Source: Oopsacas minuta
Taxonomy: Eukaryota; Animalia; Porifera
DNA: 64,000 nucleotides
Direction: 5' to 3'
Assembly (NCBI GenBank): GCA_024704765.1
Contig: JAKMXF010000297.1
Span: 426,921 to 490,920, forward strand
Part shown: one piece after another, positions 875 through 63,999 of the stretch
Numbering within the stretch: the stretch's first letter is position 1
Layout: the number at the start of each line of letters is the position of its first letter
The notes under the pieces: model-generated
What the model saw: the letters and a program-made list of their open reading frames with translations, nothing else
Told to the model about the DNA's origin: nothing
The model's database searches: none
Program-made: the position numbers and the translations under genes

Positions 875-1485
875 CAGATGAGCTCTCTCTCGTCAATCTT
901 GAACCAATTTTTGGAATAGGTGTTTCATTTGTAAAACAAAGTACAACAATCCTATTTAGGATTTTATAGGCTGATAATATCTCTGATACTTCATGTTTGT
1001 CCAATTTTCCTTAGGATTGTTACAGTATACTCTATCTATGATTAGTTTTATAATCTTATACGTTGGTTTATCTGTTATATTGTTGTATACAATCCATACA
1101 ATTCAATAATTCAATAAAGAATTAAATTATACATATGGACTGAGTGAATAATTCGTAATGAATATCACAGTGAATCCAGTTTATTATTATCATACCGGTT
1201 AATGGAATAAACTTACGTATTTTCATAAAACGTACAACACCTGACTCTGTAGCCTAGTTGCCTCAATGATTACGCCATCCGTAATTTTCGAAATTGAGTC
1301 TTGTCGCTGGAATACACAAGGTACATGTAGAAAATTAGGGACATTTGACCCATCACTAGTTTTCAATAGTTTAATAGTCTACGATCTACTTAAATAAAAC
1401 GACAGTTTACATGACTGTATTAGTGAAATAATTATCTATTAAATGATACTGAATACGAATGAATCTAATAAACATATCAACTTAC

Positions 1486-4400
1486 TTTTATGGTGTTCAT
1501 CTTGAAATTCCTTATCAAGACCTGTATGCACCTTTCTAGTGGGTCCACTAACTCCCTTATTCCCCTCTCTCCTCTTCCTCTTTTCTCTCCTGTCTCTATG
1601 TCTCTTCTTCTTCTGTTCGATTTCCTTATTCTGCCCCTCTATCCACAGGTTCTTGAAGTAGTCAGGATCTGTGTACAGCTTCATGGCATCCTTACCGTCT
1701 TCTCGTAGAGGCGTAACACGATTCAAGTTTGGAGGCGGCGCACAGCGCCTATATTGCTCCTATTTCAATTAAAGAATAATAATATTCTAATATCAAGCAG
1801 TAGTAATAACCACCACCAATCGAAATTATTATAATTCTATTAATAATATCAATTAACATATCCACAACGATAATAACTCAATATATGTTATGTACTATCA
1901 TTATCTGGAGTAGATTCAACTGGATTAGTCAATTCTGTTATGTGTTCAGATTGAGTATGTGTGTCTTCATGCTTAACTTGAGAAGGGATAGCCTCCCCTG
2001 GTGATGCAGCAGGTAGAGAGGAATGTACTGGAATAGTTTCTAAGCTCTGTTGACTAAGTCTTCCTAGTTCTCTGAACTTCTGGTGAATTTCTTCAACGTA
2101 GAGTTCTCTCAAGGGTTCTCCCAGCTCTTCTGACTTAAGCGGGACATAAACTCGATTTTTCTTCTCTGGTGTGAAATCCTCACCAGCTGACATCACACAA
2201 GGAGTACGTGATAGGAACTCATTGACTATATCAATAGGAAATATAAGTAGCAGAGCAGAGGATAAATAGGGGATAAGATCATAAATGGTGAGGTAACAGA
2301 ACTGAACAAATAACTCTTTCTCCTTCTCACTGTACGAGCTACGTTCTCTTACATCAAACTCTCTTATCGTCTGTACCATATCAGATATACTACACTGCAA
2401 AGCGTAGCGGAAAGGGAGAGCTAGTGAGATCAGAGGACATTGCTTAACTTCATTAAATGTTGCCAGTAGTTGGTTCAGGTACCGAGCTAGAGGTGTGAAC
2501 TGTAGCAGAGACTGTGGAGGGGCGAGTGTTTTACCAGAGTCTCTTGAGGGCTGGAAGTATGCTGCAGGGGGTTGAGAAGCCTGGTAGGGTAGTGTCAGGA
2601 TGTAGTTCTTCATTGAGTCTCTTAAATCAGCAGAGGCTGAGTTTATGTGGCCGGAGAGAGTCTTGAACAGAGTGCGATGAAATATATTCACAAGCATGGG
2701 TCTGAAATCTGCACCTATACGACTGAAGGATAGTCCGAAATACATACTCTGACTCAACAGAGAGTCGAGTCTCTGAATGTAATGACTGCTCAGCATCTTT
2801 TCTAGTGCTCGAAGGAATTCTCCTACCTTACATGTTATCCACCCATAGAACACGTGTGCATAGGATCTCTTGCTTTCATGAGTGTATTCTGATGACGTCA
2901 TCACAATAGATGGATCATCATTTGGGAATATTCCTCTATACTGAGTGATAATATCAAACAGATGTACTCTACTAGTCTCAATCAGCTTCCCCAGGTATGT
3001 ATAAGGGTCATCTGATGGAATAGCAGAGAGAGTCTGTTGCAACCAGCAGTTACGTGTCTGAAGGAACTTAATCCTCAGTTCTCCCTCCTCAAACACACCC
3101 ATCCTCCTCAGATACCCAATCGTCTTAAGACAGGCTGGTAACTGTATGTTGGTACCCAACAGCTGTAGCAACTGAGATTGCATAAGCTCCATGGTGTTAG
3201 AGACATCCCGTGCTATCCCCTGCATGATTGGGATATGATTGAGACGTGAAGATAGACGCTGTACATGATGAGACAATTCTAAAGCCTCCTCGTAGTAACC
3301 GTTACGCACACACGTCTCCATAACCTGAGGTATTTCCAATACTTCTAGCAGTTCAGAGTGCTTAGTGAGAACTAGTGAGTTCTTCTGTCTCTTCTCGTCA
3401 ACTTCAGCTGACCTCTGCACAAACTCTGAACACAATCTTTTAACAGTTGTAGATCGATCCATTATAGAGTCTAAATGAAAATTAACTCCGTCGAACTGGG
3501 TGAGAATATCAGAACTGCAATCAGCTGTTAGAATGAATGTACGGTAATTTTGATAAGCCAGGTTTTGTGTATCTGCATCCAGCTGGGCGCGGTCTTGTCG
3601 TAAGCGCTCTGGTTCCTCCTGCATCTGAGACAGAGAGTACGAGGCTAGCTCCTGGAGGTAGGATATATAGTCTGGTTCTACATGCCAAGATGTAGGTTTG
3701 TCTGGCATTAACCAACTGCTGATACTCTCCAGCTGAGACATATTGAGTATAAGCAATTACAGCTAATACAATGTGATAGGTTACCAGTTAAATTGGTAGA
3801 TTCTTATGAGTAGACTCTTAATGAGATAATAAATTATTTGCATTGAATAACAGGATAGCTGAAAGGGACAATTGGTAATACATTATAACAGTTTAAACCA
3901 TAAGTGCAACTGGATAGGGATAGCTGTTTTCTAGAAAGATAGATGACGTATGCTCACTACTCTATAATTTGTATATTGAAGTCCAAATAGGTAGGCACTC
4001 AAATTAACCTAAATCTGAATTTCTGATCCTTTAGTTCCTAATACGTATGTTATTTTAGATCTCATGGTATAATTTCATATAATGAATTTATAGAATATAT
4101 ACCTCACCGAAATATGGTCCAAACTGCCAGTCAATTTGGATAATAGGGGAATGGATACCTCGAGGCGGAAGGCGCCGAGTTAAGTTCATCAAGGAGCGAC
4201 GAGTAAAAGCCTCGTATAAGTAATAATTATACAATATATAAATATAAACAATAAAGTATATGTGTACCTGTAGTGTAGGAGGGAGTGTAGCTCGAGACAG
4301 GATCTGCTGTTTTGCATTCTGTCTGCTCCTGAACTTCTTGAGAGTAATTTCATGTGCTCCTACCTCCTCGTCCCCTTCTGGGTTCATCTTCTCCATGCGA

Positions 4401-57119: not shown

Positions 57120-59531
57120 TCACAATATATGTCTTATCAGTTCTGGGGATCGCTTAGCTAGTACATCCAGAATTTTCATTTTAATAGAATATCCTGATCC
57201 GGGAAGGATTCCGACAACACTTTTGATATTAGCGAGATGAGCTGAGTGGATAGATTCCGGAGGATCTGAATAGAGATTAGCCTCCCAGCACTCTAATGCT
57301 TGATCCATGTGAGCTTGATAGTATAGACAGAATCCTATGTTGTTCATAGCTGATGAACATGGGGAAAGTTCTAGAACTCTTCTGAAGGTTTGTTCAGCTT
57401 GAGAGAAACGTCTTTCTGCGATCTCTAATAAACCACAAGCCATTAAGTAGCGAGGATATTGTTCAGGATTCTCTAGATTATCCTTAGCAATTTGTAACTC
57501 TTGAGTAGCAGCAGGAATGTTGCCGACGAGAATGTAAATCTAATAATAACTATCAATAAATATCACAATGTAGAAATTGTATACGAATAAGTTACATAGA
57601 TACAAGAATGCTCAATTGGTATTCACAGCTTTGTAGGAGATTAATAGAATTCAAGTGAAATATTTCCATCAATTCTCTGAATAAAATAGAGTAGGACCTG
57701 CATCCAAGGCCTCCTGGGTGCTCAACCCACTTACATTGACGGCGCTCTAAATATGGATATGGAGATGGGGCAAAGCCAAAAGGCCAATCAAAATGTTGAA
57801 TAAATATTCGCACAATCAAAATCGTGTTATATAACTTATATTACCCACTTATGCCAGATTTGCATCCAAAAAATAAATATCATCGATATCCTATGGCTAA
57901 GGCATCCGGCATATCAATTTGAATATATAGGAAGATGGCAGTGTAAAGCTAGCGTCGTCACTTCACCTATTACCATTATAAATATTAGACAGAGCTACAA
58001 TATAACACTTAAATTGCAAGAGGACACCTCTTTCATCAAAGCTGGCGCCAGCCATTACTCTTGAATATTAAACAAAATCAAAAAAGATATATTTTGTAGA
58101 GTACACAGTACTATGATATATAGCTATAGCTTACCCTACTCTTAATGATAGAACAATCTGCTAACATAGCAGGCTGTTCCTTAGCCATGTTAGAGAATAT
58201 TAGTCTAGCGTTATAATAGTCCTTCAAGGAAACGAAAGTGCTCCCAATAGCTAGAAAAATTCTGTTAATCCTCTTTTGCCAGAGATTGATACCTTTAGAT
58301 TTTGCAAGTTCTGAAGCCTCCAATCCAAGAATGTGTTGTTTAACTCTCTGTGCAGTGTGTAATAGAAAGTAAAGCCTGTCTAGAGAACGTCTGTGTTGTC
58401 CTAGCAAATGTGGGAGAGATGAGTATAAGAGTACAAGCCCGAAAGGTACCATCCAACCACATTTGCCTCCATACCTATAACATCAATAAACAAATAATAG
58501 CAGTTTTAAGAAATTACATATTTAAGAGCTTTTTTCAATTTCAGGATTTTAATAAAATTAATTAAATCCACAAATAAATTAAAATTCAAAAAAATTATTT
58601 AATTATTCATTAATTAGAAATTGTAAGCAATCATAATATGTACCTGTCAGGATAGAATTCAAAATACATATCAGGTCTGTCAAAGTTAGAACCTGCTAGT
58701 GCCTCTATCTCATCCTCCAGTTCCCGTTTCAATCCCAACTTAAGCATAAGGCTGAATCTAGCTAACCACATCTGTAGAATTAGTGGAGAATACTCTACGT
58801 TGTTCTGTTTAGCACTGACAGAGCGTGTTTGTAGAATGAGGTCACGAGTTAGATGTAGTGCGTCAATATAGTTACCTACCCCTACTAGCTTCTCCAGCCC
58901 TCCAGATGTCACCTCTACTTCAGCGAGACAGATGCGGGGTTGATAACCTACTCTGATGTCATAGTCTGTCAGTCTGGATTCAATCTTGTGAGGAGCAATT
59001 GATTCATGACAGGTCAGGTCTTGAGGAATAGGATGCTGGTTTATGTACTTTCTCTGAGAATAATTGAATAAAGATTACCGCTTACCAAGTAATTCTATAT
59101 TGTATATACTAATACTCTTACCTGTTGCATAGCCTCTCTGGTGACAACTCCAGGAATCCATAGTGTAGAGTATATACTGTATTCGTCAGCAGTGAGCATG
59201 AAGTGAGGACATGTAGCATATTTATCACTCTTATTTGTGTGTATATTCTCATCATCAGAGCCAGAATCATGCGATGAGGGAGATACATCGGTTGGTATTA
59301 GTAAGCATTCTTGATTACTGTCTTGAATAGCGTCAGGAATAGTCATCATGGTATCTAGTTCCTCCAATTCAGATGTTGTCCTAACAATAGGAAGACTAGG
59401 CTTAGAAACAGGGTCTTCCTCATCAAGAGGATGTGTATCTGTTATCTCTGGGGTGTTAACATCAGAAAGGGGTAGCAAACCTTCTTTTGAAGGTGACGTT
59501 AGGATCACATCGGATTCTTGATCTCCATTGC
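57120..59531 (-). CDS. TRAPPC12: Trafficking protein particle complex subunit 12 (TTC15/TRAMM), 4 exons; 5' coding part probably supplied by the upstream EF-hand exons
   Basis: Exons 59531-59122, 59053-58644, 58474-58135, 57539-57120. LWIPG..TR, GLEKLV...LQMWLARFSLMLKLGL...[30 protein letters not shown], C-terminal TPRs (AMNNIGFCLYY). Confidence 0.88.
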
Positions 59532-59860
59532 CTACTAAAGAGGATTTTTTAAAATAAAAACGTAGTAATAATCAGAATTTCCTTACAATTTCAAACAATA
59601 GCATAGAATTCTGGTCAGTTTGAAAACTAAATCTTTACACAATTTCTAAACACAAGTATACAGTCCAACCTCCGAATCCGGAATTCCAAGATCCGGCACC
59701 ATTTTCCAAAAGGTTTGAAATTAATTTGACCATTTTCAGTTAATTTTCCTTTTAAGAGAGTTGTCTTTAGTTGTACATTTAATTTAATTTTGTAACTGAA
59801 AACCGTAAAACATCTAGCTACGTAATTCAAAAGCATTTCGAAATTTATCTTTTAAATATG

Positions 59861-59928
59861 CAGTAGATTCCGGTTATAAGAACATTATATGCAATTCCTG
59901 ACGATGTTCTTATAACCGGCATTCACTG
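59861..59928. mobile_element. 68-bp palindromic mini-MITE
   Basis: CAGTAGATTCCGGTTATAAGAACAT-18 nt-ATGTTCTTATAACCGGCATTCACTG. Matches both ends of the 36296-36625 element. Confidence 0.75.
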
Positions 59929-60054
59929 TGCTAATTTGATCTACTATAGAGTTATCGTTATTTCTGAGGCATCCTCCGGACGAGATTGCGCGGATCTCAA
60001 AGGTTCTGCCGTATCGAATTGATTAAATATTAATTAACATCGTATTATAAGAAA

Positions 60055-61861
60055 TTAGTTCTTACTTCCTCCAAGCTTGTAAGTCAACTGCTTATCAGAA
60101 GGTAATGTCCACTTGACCAGATGTTCAACCAATTCAGGATTCTTCTGCAACCACATCTCAAACTCATTTGGTGATAGCTTATTCGTTCTGCTGACGTCAC
60201 ACTCATGGAATGCTTGTTCTACTATCCGAGTTACTATGTCAGAAATAGCTCCTTCATTCAGTAGTGCAGAATTCTAAAAAAAGTACAGATAGATCTGTCA
60301 GTTAATAATCTAAATAGATTAGGTAGACGGAACTTCTGTCGCCCATAATTCTAACCTGGAAAATATATTAGTGATAGCTATTAGGGCTTTCATCGCAAGG
60401 GGAGTTAGTCAAGATTCCGGCGCCGGAACATATTTTGGCCAGGGTGGGTGCAAAACATTTGAACCTCAAATAGATATCATGAAATTGTAAATAATATAAA
60501 GTAATATGTCCAAAATTTTCAGGAACATAACCCCCACGAACGCAGCGGGATTCCTGTACGTGATTGACTGCATTTATATACTTATTGGTCTAAATCATCG
60601 AGGGTAGGTACCCAGCCTCCACCCCTAGTTTTGGCACACCTGAATTCGGGAAACAAGCCTAATATTCGTTGAAAATTCAGAAAATCTGCCGATCTCATTC
60701 ACAGTAGAATTCGGATAAGATGTACCACCTTGTCTAACAAAATATTAGTACGTACAGTCACTACAGTGCTACCAAGTGTGACAATGGAATTTCCTGGAGA
60801 TTAAATTTCTCAAGTATCTGATTTGTTAGGTAAAAGTTGTAAAAGTTGAAAACTTTTAATCACCTAGATATAAGCTTTATATGAGACAGCGTAGGGAAAT
60901 CGTGAGAGAGCATTAGTTTTAATCGTGCTTGAAACAGTTAATGTTAAATCTAACATTATCCAAGATGAATTTAGAAGATTACAAATGGTTTGTCGGACTA
61001 TACATGTGAATTTGTATTGTTTGACTCTATTTCAGAACAGAAACACTGTCAATTTAAAGAGGTCTTCTGGATTATACTGGTGTCGGTTTATGCAGGTTCC
61101 ACTGTATTTCCTAAATAATAACCAAGAATGCAGGCGTAATAATAGGTAGAGATGAAACTTCATACGTAGTCTACGTAAATTTATGGAGACTTGGAAGCAC
61201 TGGTACGTATTAAACGGGTGAAAGCCTTATCCGAATAGGCAAGGGCGTAGCTAGCATTGAGGCAGAAGAGACAACTGCCTCCTCGCTCTGTGATTTCTTG
61301 TTATGCCAAAAAGGGATTGATTATAATGAATGAGAATTAATTTTTGGTTTGTAAAAAGTAGTACGTATTAACCAAGGGTACGTCTATCCGATAACTGTAA
61401 CACATTTATAGTAGTTACCAGGCAGATTGTACCTGCATCTTTCCACAGCCCTTCAGTACAAGCTGTGTAGAAGATAGAATTATATTCAGCATAGTACTAA
61501 GTTCGTTCCTATCAATACCATCTCCACCTGATATATTGAACATAGAGAATAGCAGCTGACATTTCTCATGAAAAGAGCCATGTAATAACATTGCTACTCC
61601 AGAAACGAATTCTTCAAAATCTATAGTGTTAGTTTTCTTACAGTCTAGAGCTTGGAAGAGGCGCTCCCCCAGTAATAACGGTAACTTAAAATATTCACTG
61701 AAAGCTTCAAGGTTCAACACTTGTCCACCATGACCTGCCTTCGCATGTAACTCTTTAAATGAAGCACTAACAGCGGCAACCTCAAGTAAAGACAGTTGAG
61801 AGATTAGTTCTGCGTAATCTCCCTCCCCTGGATTTGTTTCTGAGCTCTCTGTTTGGCCCAT
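60055..61861 (-). CDS. N-myristoylated EF-hand Ca2+ sensor (calcineurin-B/NCS/calaxin-like), 2 exons, 215 aa if stand-alone, or N-terminus of an EF-hand-TRAPPC12 fusion
   Basis: Exon 61861-61433 (MGQTES myristoylation consensus; EF loops DCKKTNTIDFEE and NISGGDGIDRNE). Exon from 60273 (EF loop DVSRTNKLSPNE) ends either at TAA 60057-60055 or at donor GGAA|GTAAGA (60066/60065). Confidence 0.8.
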
Positions 61862-62377
61862 CCCACTTGTCAAGAATATGTCTGTCAGGGAACTGTCTAA
61901 TCAGTGGATTATTCAATCTGAGCCTGTAAAACCACAAGAAAAGCGAAATTGTTAACAAATAGGGAACCCTCATTATTCATACGGAATATGTACACATTGC
62001 ACAGATCAATCGCTACGCTGAATTAAATTTAAGATTAGAATGAAAGTAATCATACTGTAGTACTTGAAAAGGTTTTACGTATAAAAGAGTGTCCTAAACA
62101 CCTAAACACAGGAATAGTTAAAATATTAATGGCAGTACCACTTTTGAAATTGTGCGCCAGTGCTTTCCATGATTACGTAACGCAGAATATACCCATTATC
62201 CTAGAAGTGACATTATTAAAGTTTAAACAGTCCATTTAATGTGAGAAAGCATCAAGTTTTGTTGATTGTTATGGAGAGTATTATCTAAAGCATAAATTCA
62301 CCTAAGAAACTAACATTCAACATCCAAATCATAAATTCATAATGCTATCCCAGATGACATAAGGCTGAGACAGAATG

Positions 62378-62433: not shown

Positions 62434-63999
62434 TTAGGAGTCAATGAAGAAATAATTCCCACTGGCTTTCTGCTCGGAATCTTTAACTGAATGGAGCTTG
62501 TTAATCCTAGGACGATGATTGCTAGGATCACGTCGGAATGTTATCTCAAGAGATTTGAGGAATTTATTAATCCCTGTCAGCAGAATCTGAGGACTAGTAG
62601 CTAGCGTTTTAACAGAAGGAATACCTTCAAACACGATAACACGATCAGCGAGATAGGTAGCCATTATGAAGTCATGTTCTACTATAAATGCAGTCTTCTT
62701 TGCGTGAAGAATAAATCGTTTTATAACTTTAGAAGCAATCAGCCGCTGCTCAGAGTCCAAATAAGCAGACGGTTCATCTATTAGATAAATATCAGCTGGT
62801 TTTCCTAGACATAGAGTAATAGCAACTCTCTGTAGCTCTCCTCCTGATAAATGCTTCACTGATTGATCATACAAGTTCTCCATGTTGAGAGGTTTAATGA
62901 CGTCACTAATGAATTGTGGGTGTATGTATGCATCTCTGATCTTAGAATGAAACAGCTGTTGTACACTCCCATCAAATGAAGGAGATATCTTCTGAGGCTT
63001 ATAGCTTATGTTAAGTTGTGGAATCTCTATCCCACTCTCTGGAGGAGTGAGGCCAGCTAGCATTCTGATGAAAGTAGTCTTACCAGTGCCATTCTCTCCC
63101 AATAACACGATTATTTCAGAGTCCGTAAACTCTCCCTCCACAACGGATAATGAGAACTCACCCAGGTTCTTATCCATGTTAGGGTAACCATAACGTCTAA
63201 TACGCTTAACCTCCTCACTCTCAGTCGTCTCTGCTACTTTGAAAACAAGATTAGTGGGACGAAAACGTAGATTTTCGGTAGGAATGAATCCGTCCAGGAA
63301 AATATTGATCCCTTCCCGTACCCCAGCTGGGAGTGTCACTACTCCATACACCCCTGGTACCCCATACAGACAACAGATAAAGTCAGAGAGGTAGTCTAAT
63401 ACAGAGAGATCATGCTCTACTACAACTACGTAGTTCTCAGGAGATAAAAGTTTACGAATAGCTTGAGCTGCATTTAATCGTTGTTTGACATCTAAGAAGG
63501 AGGAAGGTTCATCAAACATGAAAACATCAGCTTGTTGTAGACAGGCTAATGCACAAGCAAATCTCTGTAGCTCTCCTCCTGACAACTCAGAGATATCTCT
63601 ACCTCTTAAGTTCCCAAGTTCAAACATTTCTACGTATCTGTCTTGCTCCTTCTTTTCGTCCTTCTTGTCCAGTAACTGCTGGACAGATCCCTTCACAGCT
63701 TTAGGGATCTGATCAACAGATTGAGGCTTGATCACAGCTTTCACTTTGTCTTCCAGTACTCGCATGAAATAGCTCTGTAGCTCAGAGCCCCTAAAGTGTA
63801 TGAGTATGTCTTTCCAGTCAGGAGGCTGGTCCCACCTGCCTAGATTCGGTTTCAGCTTTCCAGCTAGGATCTTAAGTGCAGTAGATTTACCTATGCCATT
63901 AGTGCCTACCAGTCCCAGCACCTGACCAGGTCTGGGCATAGGCAGACGATGCAATTTGAATGAGTTAGCACTGTAGCGATGAGTCGTGTCTTTATTCAG
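62434..63999 (-). CDS. ABCE1: ABCE1 (RLI1) ribosome recycling ATPase; 5' end (Fe-S domain) outside window
   Basis: [14 protein letters not shown], Walker [10 protein letters not shown] and GENGTGKTT, two LSGGELQR signatures, [20 protein letters not shown]. More than 1.5 kb without an intron. Confidence 0.98.

Follow-up and report, generated by a model that had tools for sequence, protein, structure and literature searches.

An NCS-like EF-hand domain spliced to TRAPPC12 in RNA of the glass sponge Oopsacas minuta

Introduction

TRAPPC12 (TTC15/TRAMM) is the TRAPPIII-specific subunit of animals which binds TRAPPC11, C8 and C13. Work on the human and fly proteins describes a TRAPPIII subunit whose N-terminus is disordered and phosphorylated. 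The question treated here is raised by a stretch of 64,000 nucleotides from the genome of the glass sponge Oopsacas minuta (contig JAKMXF010000297.1; "the window" in the following), in which two exons coding for an EF-hand protein with its own stop codon are followed by exons coding for TRAPPC12: do these belong to one gene or to two, and if to one, what is an EF-hand domain doing in front of TRAPPC12? A first-pass annotation, made from the sequence, had proposed a splice switch between a free EF-hand sensor and a fusion of the two parts. We find that 62017-57120 on the minus strand is very probably one six-exon gene, the sole TRAPPC12 gene of the genome, in which EF-hand domain and TRAPPC12 are spliced together constitutively. 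The fusion is real and old, and it is not confined to sponges.

Structure of the gene

Positions are in the numbering of the window and the coding features are all on the minus strand. The exons of the spliced model were examined one at a time; a slash in a sequence or a pair of positions marks a splice border. The features are:

61862..62017 (-), 5' untranslated region, with two alternative spliced-leader acceptors known from the RNA contigs of sequencing run X4
61433..61861 (-), exon 1, coding part, 143 codons: ATG, MGQTES, a degenerate first EF-hand (EF1), loops of EF2 and EF3
60274..61432 (-), intron 1, 1159 nucleotides, GT..AG; RNA joint at depth 1410; multi-copy repeat at ~61021-61108
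60066..60273 (-), exon 2, 208 nucleotides: EF4 loop DVSRTNKLSPNE and end of the EF-hand domain (...KLGG), with a phase-1 donor used in RNA
59535..60065 (-), intron 2, 531 nucleotides, GT..AG; in-frame TAA at 60057-60055; RNA joint 59534/60066
59122..59534 (-), exon 3, 413 nucleotides: acidic Ser/Pro-rich linker, then the beginning of TRAPPC12 homology (YSTLWIPGVVTREAMQQ)
58644..59053 (-), exon 4, TRAPPC12 core; phmmer matches to named TRAPPC12 at 1e-8 to 4e-16
58135..58474 (-), exon 5, TRAPPC12 core with the MVPF...LDRL motif region; HMMER matches
57120..57539 (-), exon 6, TPR repeats (Pfam TPR_2/TPR_1), TGA stop at 57122-57120; phmmer matches to TRAPPC12 C-termini

Translation starts at the ATG at 61861 and opens with MGQTESS. 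The donor of exon 1 at 61433 reads CAG/GTACAA. That of exon 2 reads GGAA/GTAAGA in phase 1; its last exon base is 60066, nine nucleotides before the TAA at 60057-60055, and reading through it yields an open reading frame of 215 amino acids ending in ...KLGGSKN, both just as the first-pass annotation had described them. The acceptor of exon 3, CTTTAGTAG/GC, contains two AGs three bases apart, so that the first exon base could be 59534 or 59531, and both AGs keep the frame into ...NGDQESDV.... Consistent phases and GT..AG borders are found for the four further exons (to 59122; 59053-58644; 58474-58135; 57539-57120).

Followed upstream from the acceptor without splicing, the frame of exon 3 is closed by a stop after 11 codons, with no ATG in between. 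From the acceptor the frame is open, and its first in-frame Met comes only after 61 codons, preceded by four out-of-frame ATGs (three in the earlier count). The arrangement goes beyond chance: mononucleotide shuffles gave P = 0.027 for a frame that stays open from the acceptor up to the first Met in the window, and 0.025, 0.12 and 0.19 in three relatives. The predicted product has about 739 amino acids and consists of the MGQTES motif, an NCS-like four-EF-hand domain of ~212 amino acids, an acidic linker of ~110 amino acids, which is disordered, and a TPR-containing TRAPPC12 core.

The EF-hand and TRAPPC12 exons are joined in RNA

Four sequencing runs from one sample of one study cover the locus, none of them recorded as RNA. 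Runs X1-X3 cover it evenly and thus behave as DNA, whereas X4 behaves as RNA, showing exon/intron contrast and GT..AG joints: its contig depth is 1000-4000 over the exons and 0-190 over the introns. Joints with GT..AG ends were found in X4 exactly at all five predicted exon borders, and none of the five is present in X1-X3. Their contig depths are:

60273/61433, depth 1410
59534/60066, EF-hand donor to TRAPPC12 exon, depth 1351
59053/59122, depth 1615
58474/58644, depth 1352
57539/58135, depth 1548

The joint which decides the question, 60066 to 59534, thus has a depth of 1351 as compared to 1352-1615 at the four others, and the 531-base stretch that had been read as intergenic is an intron. 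The in-frame splice foreseen by the first-pass annotation is therefore the one seen in RNA, with one correction: the contig uses the upstream AG of the tandem (first exon base 59534, TTTAG/TAGGC) and not 59531, which makes the junction GG-I-G-NGDQ, adds one codon and brings the product from 738 to 739 amino acids. The proposed order of MGxxxS motif, EF-hands, linker and TRAPPC12 in one protein is borne out by this joint, by the translation and by the homology searches described below.

RNA depth within intron 2 is 0 over 59560-59743 and 27 over 59744-59927, and its first ~140 nucleotides reach about 5% of exon depth (arithmetic on bin means), a level similar to that of intron 1. Intron 1 is spanned by a single RNA contig (60333-61462) whose depth of 188 corresponds to about 6-10% of that of the exons, and intron 5 has a depth of ~15. 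The coverage of intron 1 suggests marked retention of this intron or a separate transcript within it.

Identity of the TRAPPC12 half

A HMMER search of the whole library with exon 5 gave 46 matches, and the named ones are TRAPPC12 proteins from at least 15 animal species, including sea cucumber, starfish, sea urchins, acorn worm, bivalves, gastropods, octopus, crayfish, barnacle, scorpion and Nematostella; a choanoflagellate and Syssomonas are also among the matches. Apostichopus, Procambarus, Mya, Argopecten, Nematostella, Octopus and Acanthaster are genera represented among the named TRAPPC12 matches. Exons 4 and 6 match the same proteins at collinear positions in phmmer searches. The core around ...LDxPDLYYExYP / MVPF...LDRL is present and is followed by C-terminal TPR repeats. 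The identification rests on the whole-library search, because a sequence search of the PDB with exons 5 and 6 found no TRAPPC12 chain, just generic or designed TPR proteins.

Homology to the named TRAPPC12 proteins of echinoderms, molluscs, arthropods, a hemichordate and cnidarians is found in the last part of exon 3 and in exons 4-6, and the C-terminus carries TPR repeats. The difference lies in front of this region: the sampled bilaterian and choanoflagellate proteins have a long N-terminus without a Pfam domain, whereas the sponge protein carries a myristoylation-type motif and an NCS-like EF-hand domain. The sole match of exon 5 in the 61.46-Mb genome is C297:485055-485393, the copy in the window, so that TRAPPC12 is single-copy; EF-hand exon 1 is single-copy likewise.

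The same gene in related sponges

A word search with exon 1 gave three exon-sized open reading frames only, all of them in related assemblies, on large ENA contigs (loci L001, L002 and L003) and with 74-83% identity. All six exons are present in the same order at each of the three loci, the homologs of exon 3 being 59-61% identical. The EF-hand domain ends in ...KLGG with a phase-1 GT donor directly after it, and a frame-restoring AG acceptor follows after an intron of 350 nucleotides in L001, 58 in L002 and 113 in L003. The linker runs for 58-71 open codons before its first Met, without an in-frame ATG and with at least one out-of-frame ATG. The tails that would be added by reading through the donor are SKN, GNDINILFRLCKGGVG, GENSSLNVTRQ and CE in the four genomes, each closed by a stop; they share nothing, as would be expected of intron sequence.

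The acidic linker is divergent and has one conserved island (59340-59375 in exon 3), TTSELEELD[TA]M..IPD, which is identical in the four glass-sponge sequences and of which no counterpart was seen in the linkers of the cnidarians. The island may act as a short linear motif; a helix to which the EF-hand domain or another TRAPP subunit binds would be an example.

The fusion in cnidarians

The protein XP_048582396.1 of Nematostella (902 amino acids, "uncharacterized protein LOC5506933 isoform X1") matches exon 1 at 2.8e-24 and exon 2 at 1.8e-9, and it matches exons 4-6 as well; it starts with MGQGKS. When its first 210 residues were compared to long proteins, EF-hand plus TPR proteins of 747-895 amino acids were found in Pocillopora, Montipora, Actinia and Dendronephthya, labelled "TRAPPC12-like" or "uncharacterized". 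At least 12 full-length EF-hand plus TPR proteins turned up in anthozoans; among their sources are several contigs of 2.6-3.2 kb, the size of a cDNA, which encode the whole fusion uninterrupted. The search for this architecture elsewhere, which had been suggested as a check, was therefore positive both in the three related sponge assemblies and in anthozoans.

The anthozoan models have the same order of MGxxxS motif, EF-hand domain, disordered linker and TRAPPC12 core as the sponge gene, and differ from it in a longer linker (~300 amino acids) that is without the TTSELEELD island. The Nematostella locus has a phase-1 intron of ~70 nucleotides between the EF domain and the linker exon. We considered whether this intron position is shared with the sponges: both introns are in phase 1 at the boundary between EF-hand domain and linker, yet they lie ~10 aligned residues apart, and homology is not claimed.

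Neither hidden Markov models built on the module nor Pfam scans of the N-terminal regions detected it in the TRAPPC12 proteins sampled from bilaterians or in that of the choanoflagellate Salpingoeca helianthica. The statement that known TRAPPC12 N-termini are without EF-hands accordingly holds for these sampled proteins, and fails for the anthozoan models.

RefSeq also models a second Nematostella isoform of 765 amino acids (P0022 vs P0069), which begins after EF3 and is without the myristoylation motif, and a group of proteins of 631-649 amino acids (P0025, P0084-P0091) likewise starts within the EF3 loop. These short cnidarian N-termini could be alternative N-termini or artefacts of exon-wise gene calling.

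The EF-hand domain

Exon 1 matches the Pfam families EF-hand_6, EF-hand_1 and EF-hand_7 with scores just below the gathering cut-offs. In a phmmer search of the PDB it found the EF domain of NOX5, GCAP1, KChIP1, hippocalcin, CBL4 and calaxin at 1e-7 to 1e-8; a search of the protein atlas returned merely generic EF-hand clusters. M1, G2 and S6 are invariant in nine of nine aligned sequences (four from sponges, five from cnidarians), which agrees with the myristoylation consensus M-G-x-x-x-S/T, and from this motif Gly2 is predicted to be myristoylated. It should be noted that some 30 further positions of exon 1 are also invariant between sponges and cnidarians, at an overall identity of 36-43%.

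An AlphaFold2 (AF2) model of the Nematostella EF domain matches the folds of KChIP1, calaxin, NCS-1, hippocalcin and recoverin over 190-210 columns with template modelling (TM) scores of 0.45-0.60. The domain resembles the NCS family (recoverin, NCS-1, hippocalcin, GCAP, KChIP) as well as calaxin, CBL and the EF domain of NOX5 in having a four-EF-hand fold of ~200 amino acids, the MGxxxS motif and a degenerate EF1; these proteins are its best matches in the PDB by sequence and by fold. It differs in several ways from the NCS family, with which it shares 17-23% identity. Those proteins are small and free-standing, whereas here the domain is the N-terminal part of a 739-amino-acid protein and is spliced to TRAPPC12 exons in RNA. 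In the NCS family EF1 is disabled and Ca2+ is bound at canonical sites in EF2 and EF3, often in EF4 too; in the sponges it is EF4 which is best kept, whereas EF2 and EF3 are impaired. The Ca2+-myristoyl switch of NCS proteins is for the sponge domain an analogy only.

Alternative readings

Several observations weigh against the reading of the locus as one constitutively spliced gene with a Ca2+-modulated domain. The ligand position 3 of EF2 is a Lys and position 5 of EF3 is a Gly in four of four sponge sequences, which makes Ca2+ binding by these loops doubtful, and the structural model is that of the Nematostella ortholog, with a mean predicted local distance difference test (pLDDT) score of 67.7. 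The RNA is a single library viewed as assembled contigs, and such contigs cannot yield isoform ratios, transcript ends or rare variants; the ~5% depth at the start of intron 2 may reflect a minor read-through or retained form. Spliced-leader trans-splicing is furthermore active in this genome, and a leader at exon 3 is conceivable.

The alternative that survives best leaves the fusion intact and concerns Ca2+. A Ca2+-modulated membrane-targeting role of the EF-hand domain, proposed by analogy to NCS proteins, is tentative and would in our judgement have somewhat less than an even chance of being right. Against it can be set the view that the glass-sponge domain no longer senses Ca2+ and works as a constitutive lipid anchor or a protein-binding module, as Ca2+-independent KChIP- or CHP-type proteins do; we regard this as unlikely, though as a serious competitor. 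It would account for the substitutions in EF2 and EF3, by which two of the three recognisable sponge EF loops are without one ligand residue each, for an EF1 that is degenerate in the four sponge sequences to the point of being unrecognisable, and for Pfam scores under the gathering cut-offs. It does not account for EF4, where the full ligand set (D, S/T, T, backbone, S, E; D-x-S/T-x-T-N-K-L-S-x-x-E) is present in four of four sponges, nor for the Glu at -Z, which is invariant in both EF2 and EF3. Against this view there are also the EF2 loops of hexacorals, which unlike those of the sponges are canonical and exceed the Pfam cut-offs.

A second alternative is the regulated switch of the first-pass annotation, in which retention of intron 2, or polyadenylation inside it, would give the free 215-amino-acid sensor and splicing would give the fusion. 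An in-frame stop follows soon after the donor at four of four sponge loci, so that any retention would produce a complete EF-hand-only protein; the RNA depth in the first ~140 nucleotides of intron 2, dropping to 0 beyond, and the Nematostella isoform with a different N-terminus could be taken in the same direction. Early stops are, however, the null expectation for any AT-rich intron, and the tails they close are conserved neither in sequence nor in length (3, 17, 12 and 2 codons). No AATAAA occurs within 130 nucleotides downstream of the TAA, the junction equals the constitutive ones in depth while intron 2 is mostly at 0-27, and the one RNA library offers no comparison of conditions. Since each of the four genomes has a different read-through tail, there is no pointer to a free product under selection. 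A free 215-amino-acid protein could arise solely by retention of intron 2, and these results suggest that it would be at most a minor by-product; the proposal of a regulated switch to it is unsupported, and we consider it improbable.

The last alternative holds that there are two co-transcribed genes, the in-frame joint being a by-product of read-through, with TRAPPC12 made from an mRNA that starts in exon 3 or receives a leader there and is translated from the Met of ELEELDTM. In its favour one may cite the exon 2 reading frame with its own stop nine nucleotides beyond the donor, the low, non-zero RNA depth in part of intron 2, the activity of trans-splicing, and the fact that the Met at ELEELD[TA]M is kept at four of four sponge loci. 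This Met is, however, preceded by one to four out-of-frame ATGs in every species, in a frame that is open upstream in four of four, and the phase and position of the donor are conserved whereas the read-through tails are not. The intron between EF-hand domain and linker is merely 58 nucleotides long in L002 and ~70 in Nematostella, and anthozoan cDNA-sized contigs encode the same fusion. A free-standing ortholog of the EF-hand module was found neither by the exon 1 word search nor by a search with the Nematostella EF piece, which returned exon fragments and partial models only. The locus does resemble read-through (conjoined-gene) chimeras in having an upstream reading frame with its own stop and a donor just before it, joined to a downstream coding acceptor. 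In a conjoined transcript, however, both parents have their own start and stop codons and their own transcripts and the chimera is minor, whereas here an independent start codon for the downstream part is absent from four genomes, the joint matches the constitutive ones in abundance, and the arrangement is conserved across two phyla. Because the junction is as deep as the constitutive joints and the downstream part is without a start codon in four genomes, the reading as two genes is disfavoured, to the point of being very improbable.

Spliced leaders, intron repeats and neighbouring genes

The 5' end of the gene carries two different leaders, ...AACTTTCATAAAACTAAACTACAG and ...CAAATCTTCATAAAAAACTTACAG. 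The X4 contigs have foreign ends of 21 and 19 letters beyond 62020 and 61928, and the spliced-leader acceptors among the loose ends listed have their first exon bases at 62017 (aattcAG/C) and 61923 (tttacAG/G). Each leader has two genomic copies, followed by CAG/GTAAGT (GTAAGTTG donor) and by similar downstream sequence; because of this donor and the similar sequence, the copies are candidate spliced-leader RNA genes of two families. The four copies (L004-L007, genome G000) are:

C312:163221-163239 (+), leader copy
C312:164611-164629 (-), leader copy
C10:47269-47289 (+), leader copy
C10:77407-77427 (+), leader copy

The O. minuta genome paper mentions neither TRAPP nor trans-splicing (PMC10280926), and trans-spliced leaders have been reported in the glass sponge Aphrocallistes vastus (PMC10282587).

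Introns 2 (59861-59928) and 1 (61021-61108) contain short multi-copy repeats at which the DNA contig depth is 4-6 times that of the flanks. The one in intron 2 is an inverted repeat which could form a hairpin with arms of 25 nucleotides and resembles a miniature inverted-repeat transposable element (MITE). DNA depth is 4 times elevated over 61032-61215 in intron 1. The repeats are accompanied by many loose ends and by spurious joints (59929/61082). A variant allele with a C inserted behind 59885 is present in all four runs, and at 61022-61080 59 bases are replaced by 25 others.

ABCE1 is located directly upstream on the same strand (62434-63954, minus), with its stop ~415 nucleotides from the first spliced-leader acceptor of the gene. 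In the relatives ABCE1 is found at 5893-7698 in L001 and at 5700-7499 in L003, and both retain the gene order RTC, WD40 (NLE-type), ABCE1, EF-hand/TRAPPC12 as a tight same-strand array.

Proposed function and significance

The RNA contigs show that the pre-mRNA receives a spliced leader at one of the two acceptors upstream of the ATG, and that all five introns, the 531-nucleotide intron 2 included, are removed to give a single mRNA for motif, EF-hand domain, linker and TRAPPC12. A model of how the protein may work builds on this. Gly2 would be myristoylated, and the EF-hand domain could anchor the protein at membranes, possibly modulated by Ca2+. In this way it may place or regulate the TRAPPIII-specific subunit, and thereby Rab1 activation, at ER-Golgi (endoplasmic reticulum to Golgi) or autophagy membranes.

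The literature searched contains no paper linking TRAPPC12 with EF-hands and none on a direct Ca2+ or lipid-anchor input to TRAPP complexes, and a constitutive fusion of 739 codons is apparently undescribed. The weight of the finding is tempered by the architecture being already visible, uncommented, in RefSeq cnidarian models, and likewise by the biochemistry, which we infer. For annotation it means that the 215-amino-acid "EF-hand protein" and the start-less "TRAPPC12" belong in one model, here and in relatives. That an NCS-type domain with a myristoylation motif is part of the only TRAPPC12 of a glass sponge and of anthozoans offers a testable hypothesis, namely that placement of the guanine nucleotide exchange factor for Rab1 is controlled by Ca2+ in early-branching animals. 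It is also a clear example of a domain lost or gained at the base of Bilateria.

The most far-reaching version, which we consider rather unlikely, is that the ancestral animal TRAPPC12 had a myristoylated NCS-like sensor which was kept in glass sponges and anthozoans and lost in bilaterians, and that Ca2+ switches TRAPPIII recruitment and Rab1 activation directly in the animals that kept it. Glass sponges are syncytial and conduct Ca2+ action potentials. If this version were true, electrical signalling would be coupled to membrane traffic or autophagy in these animals.

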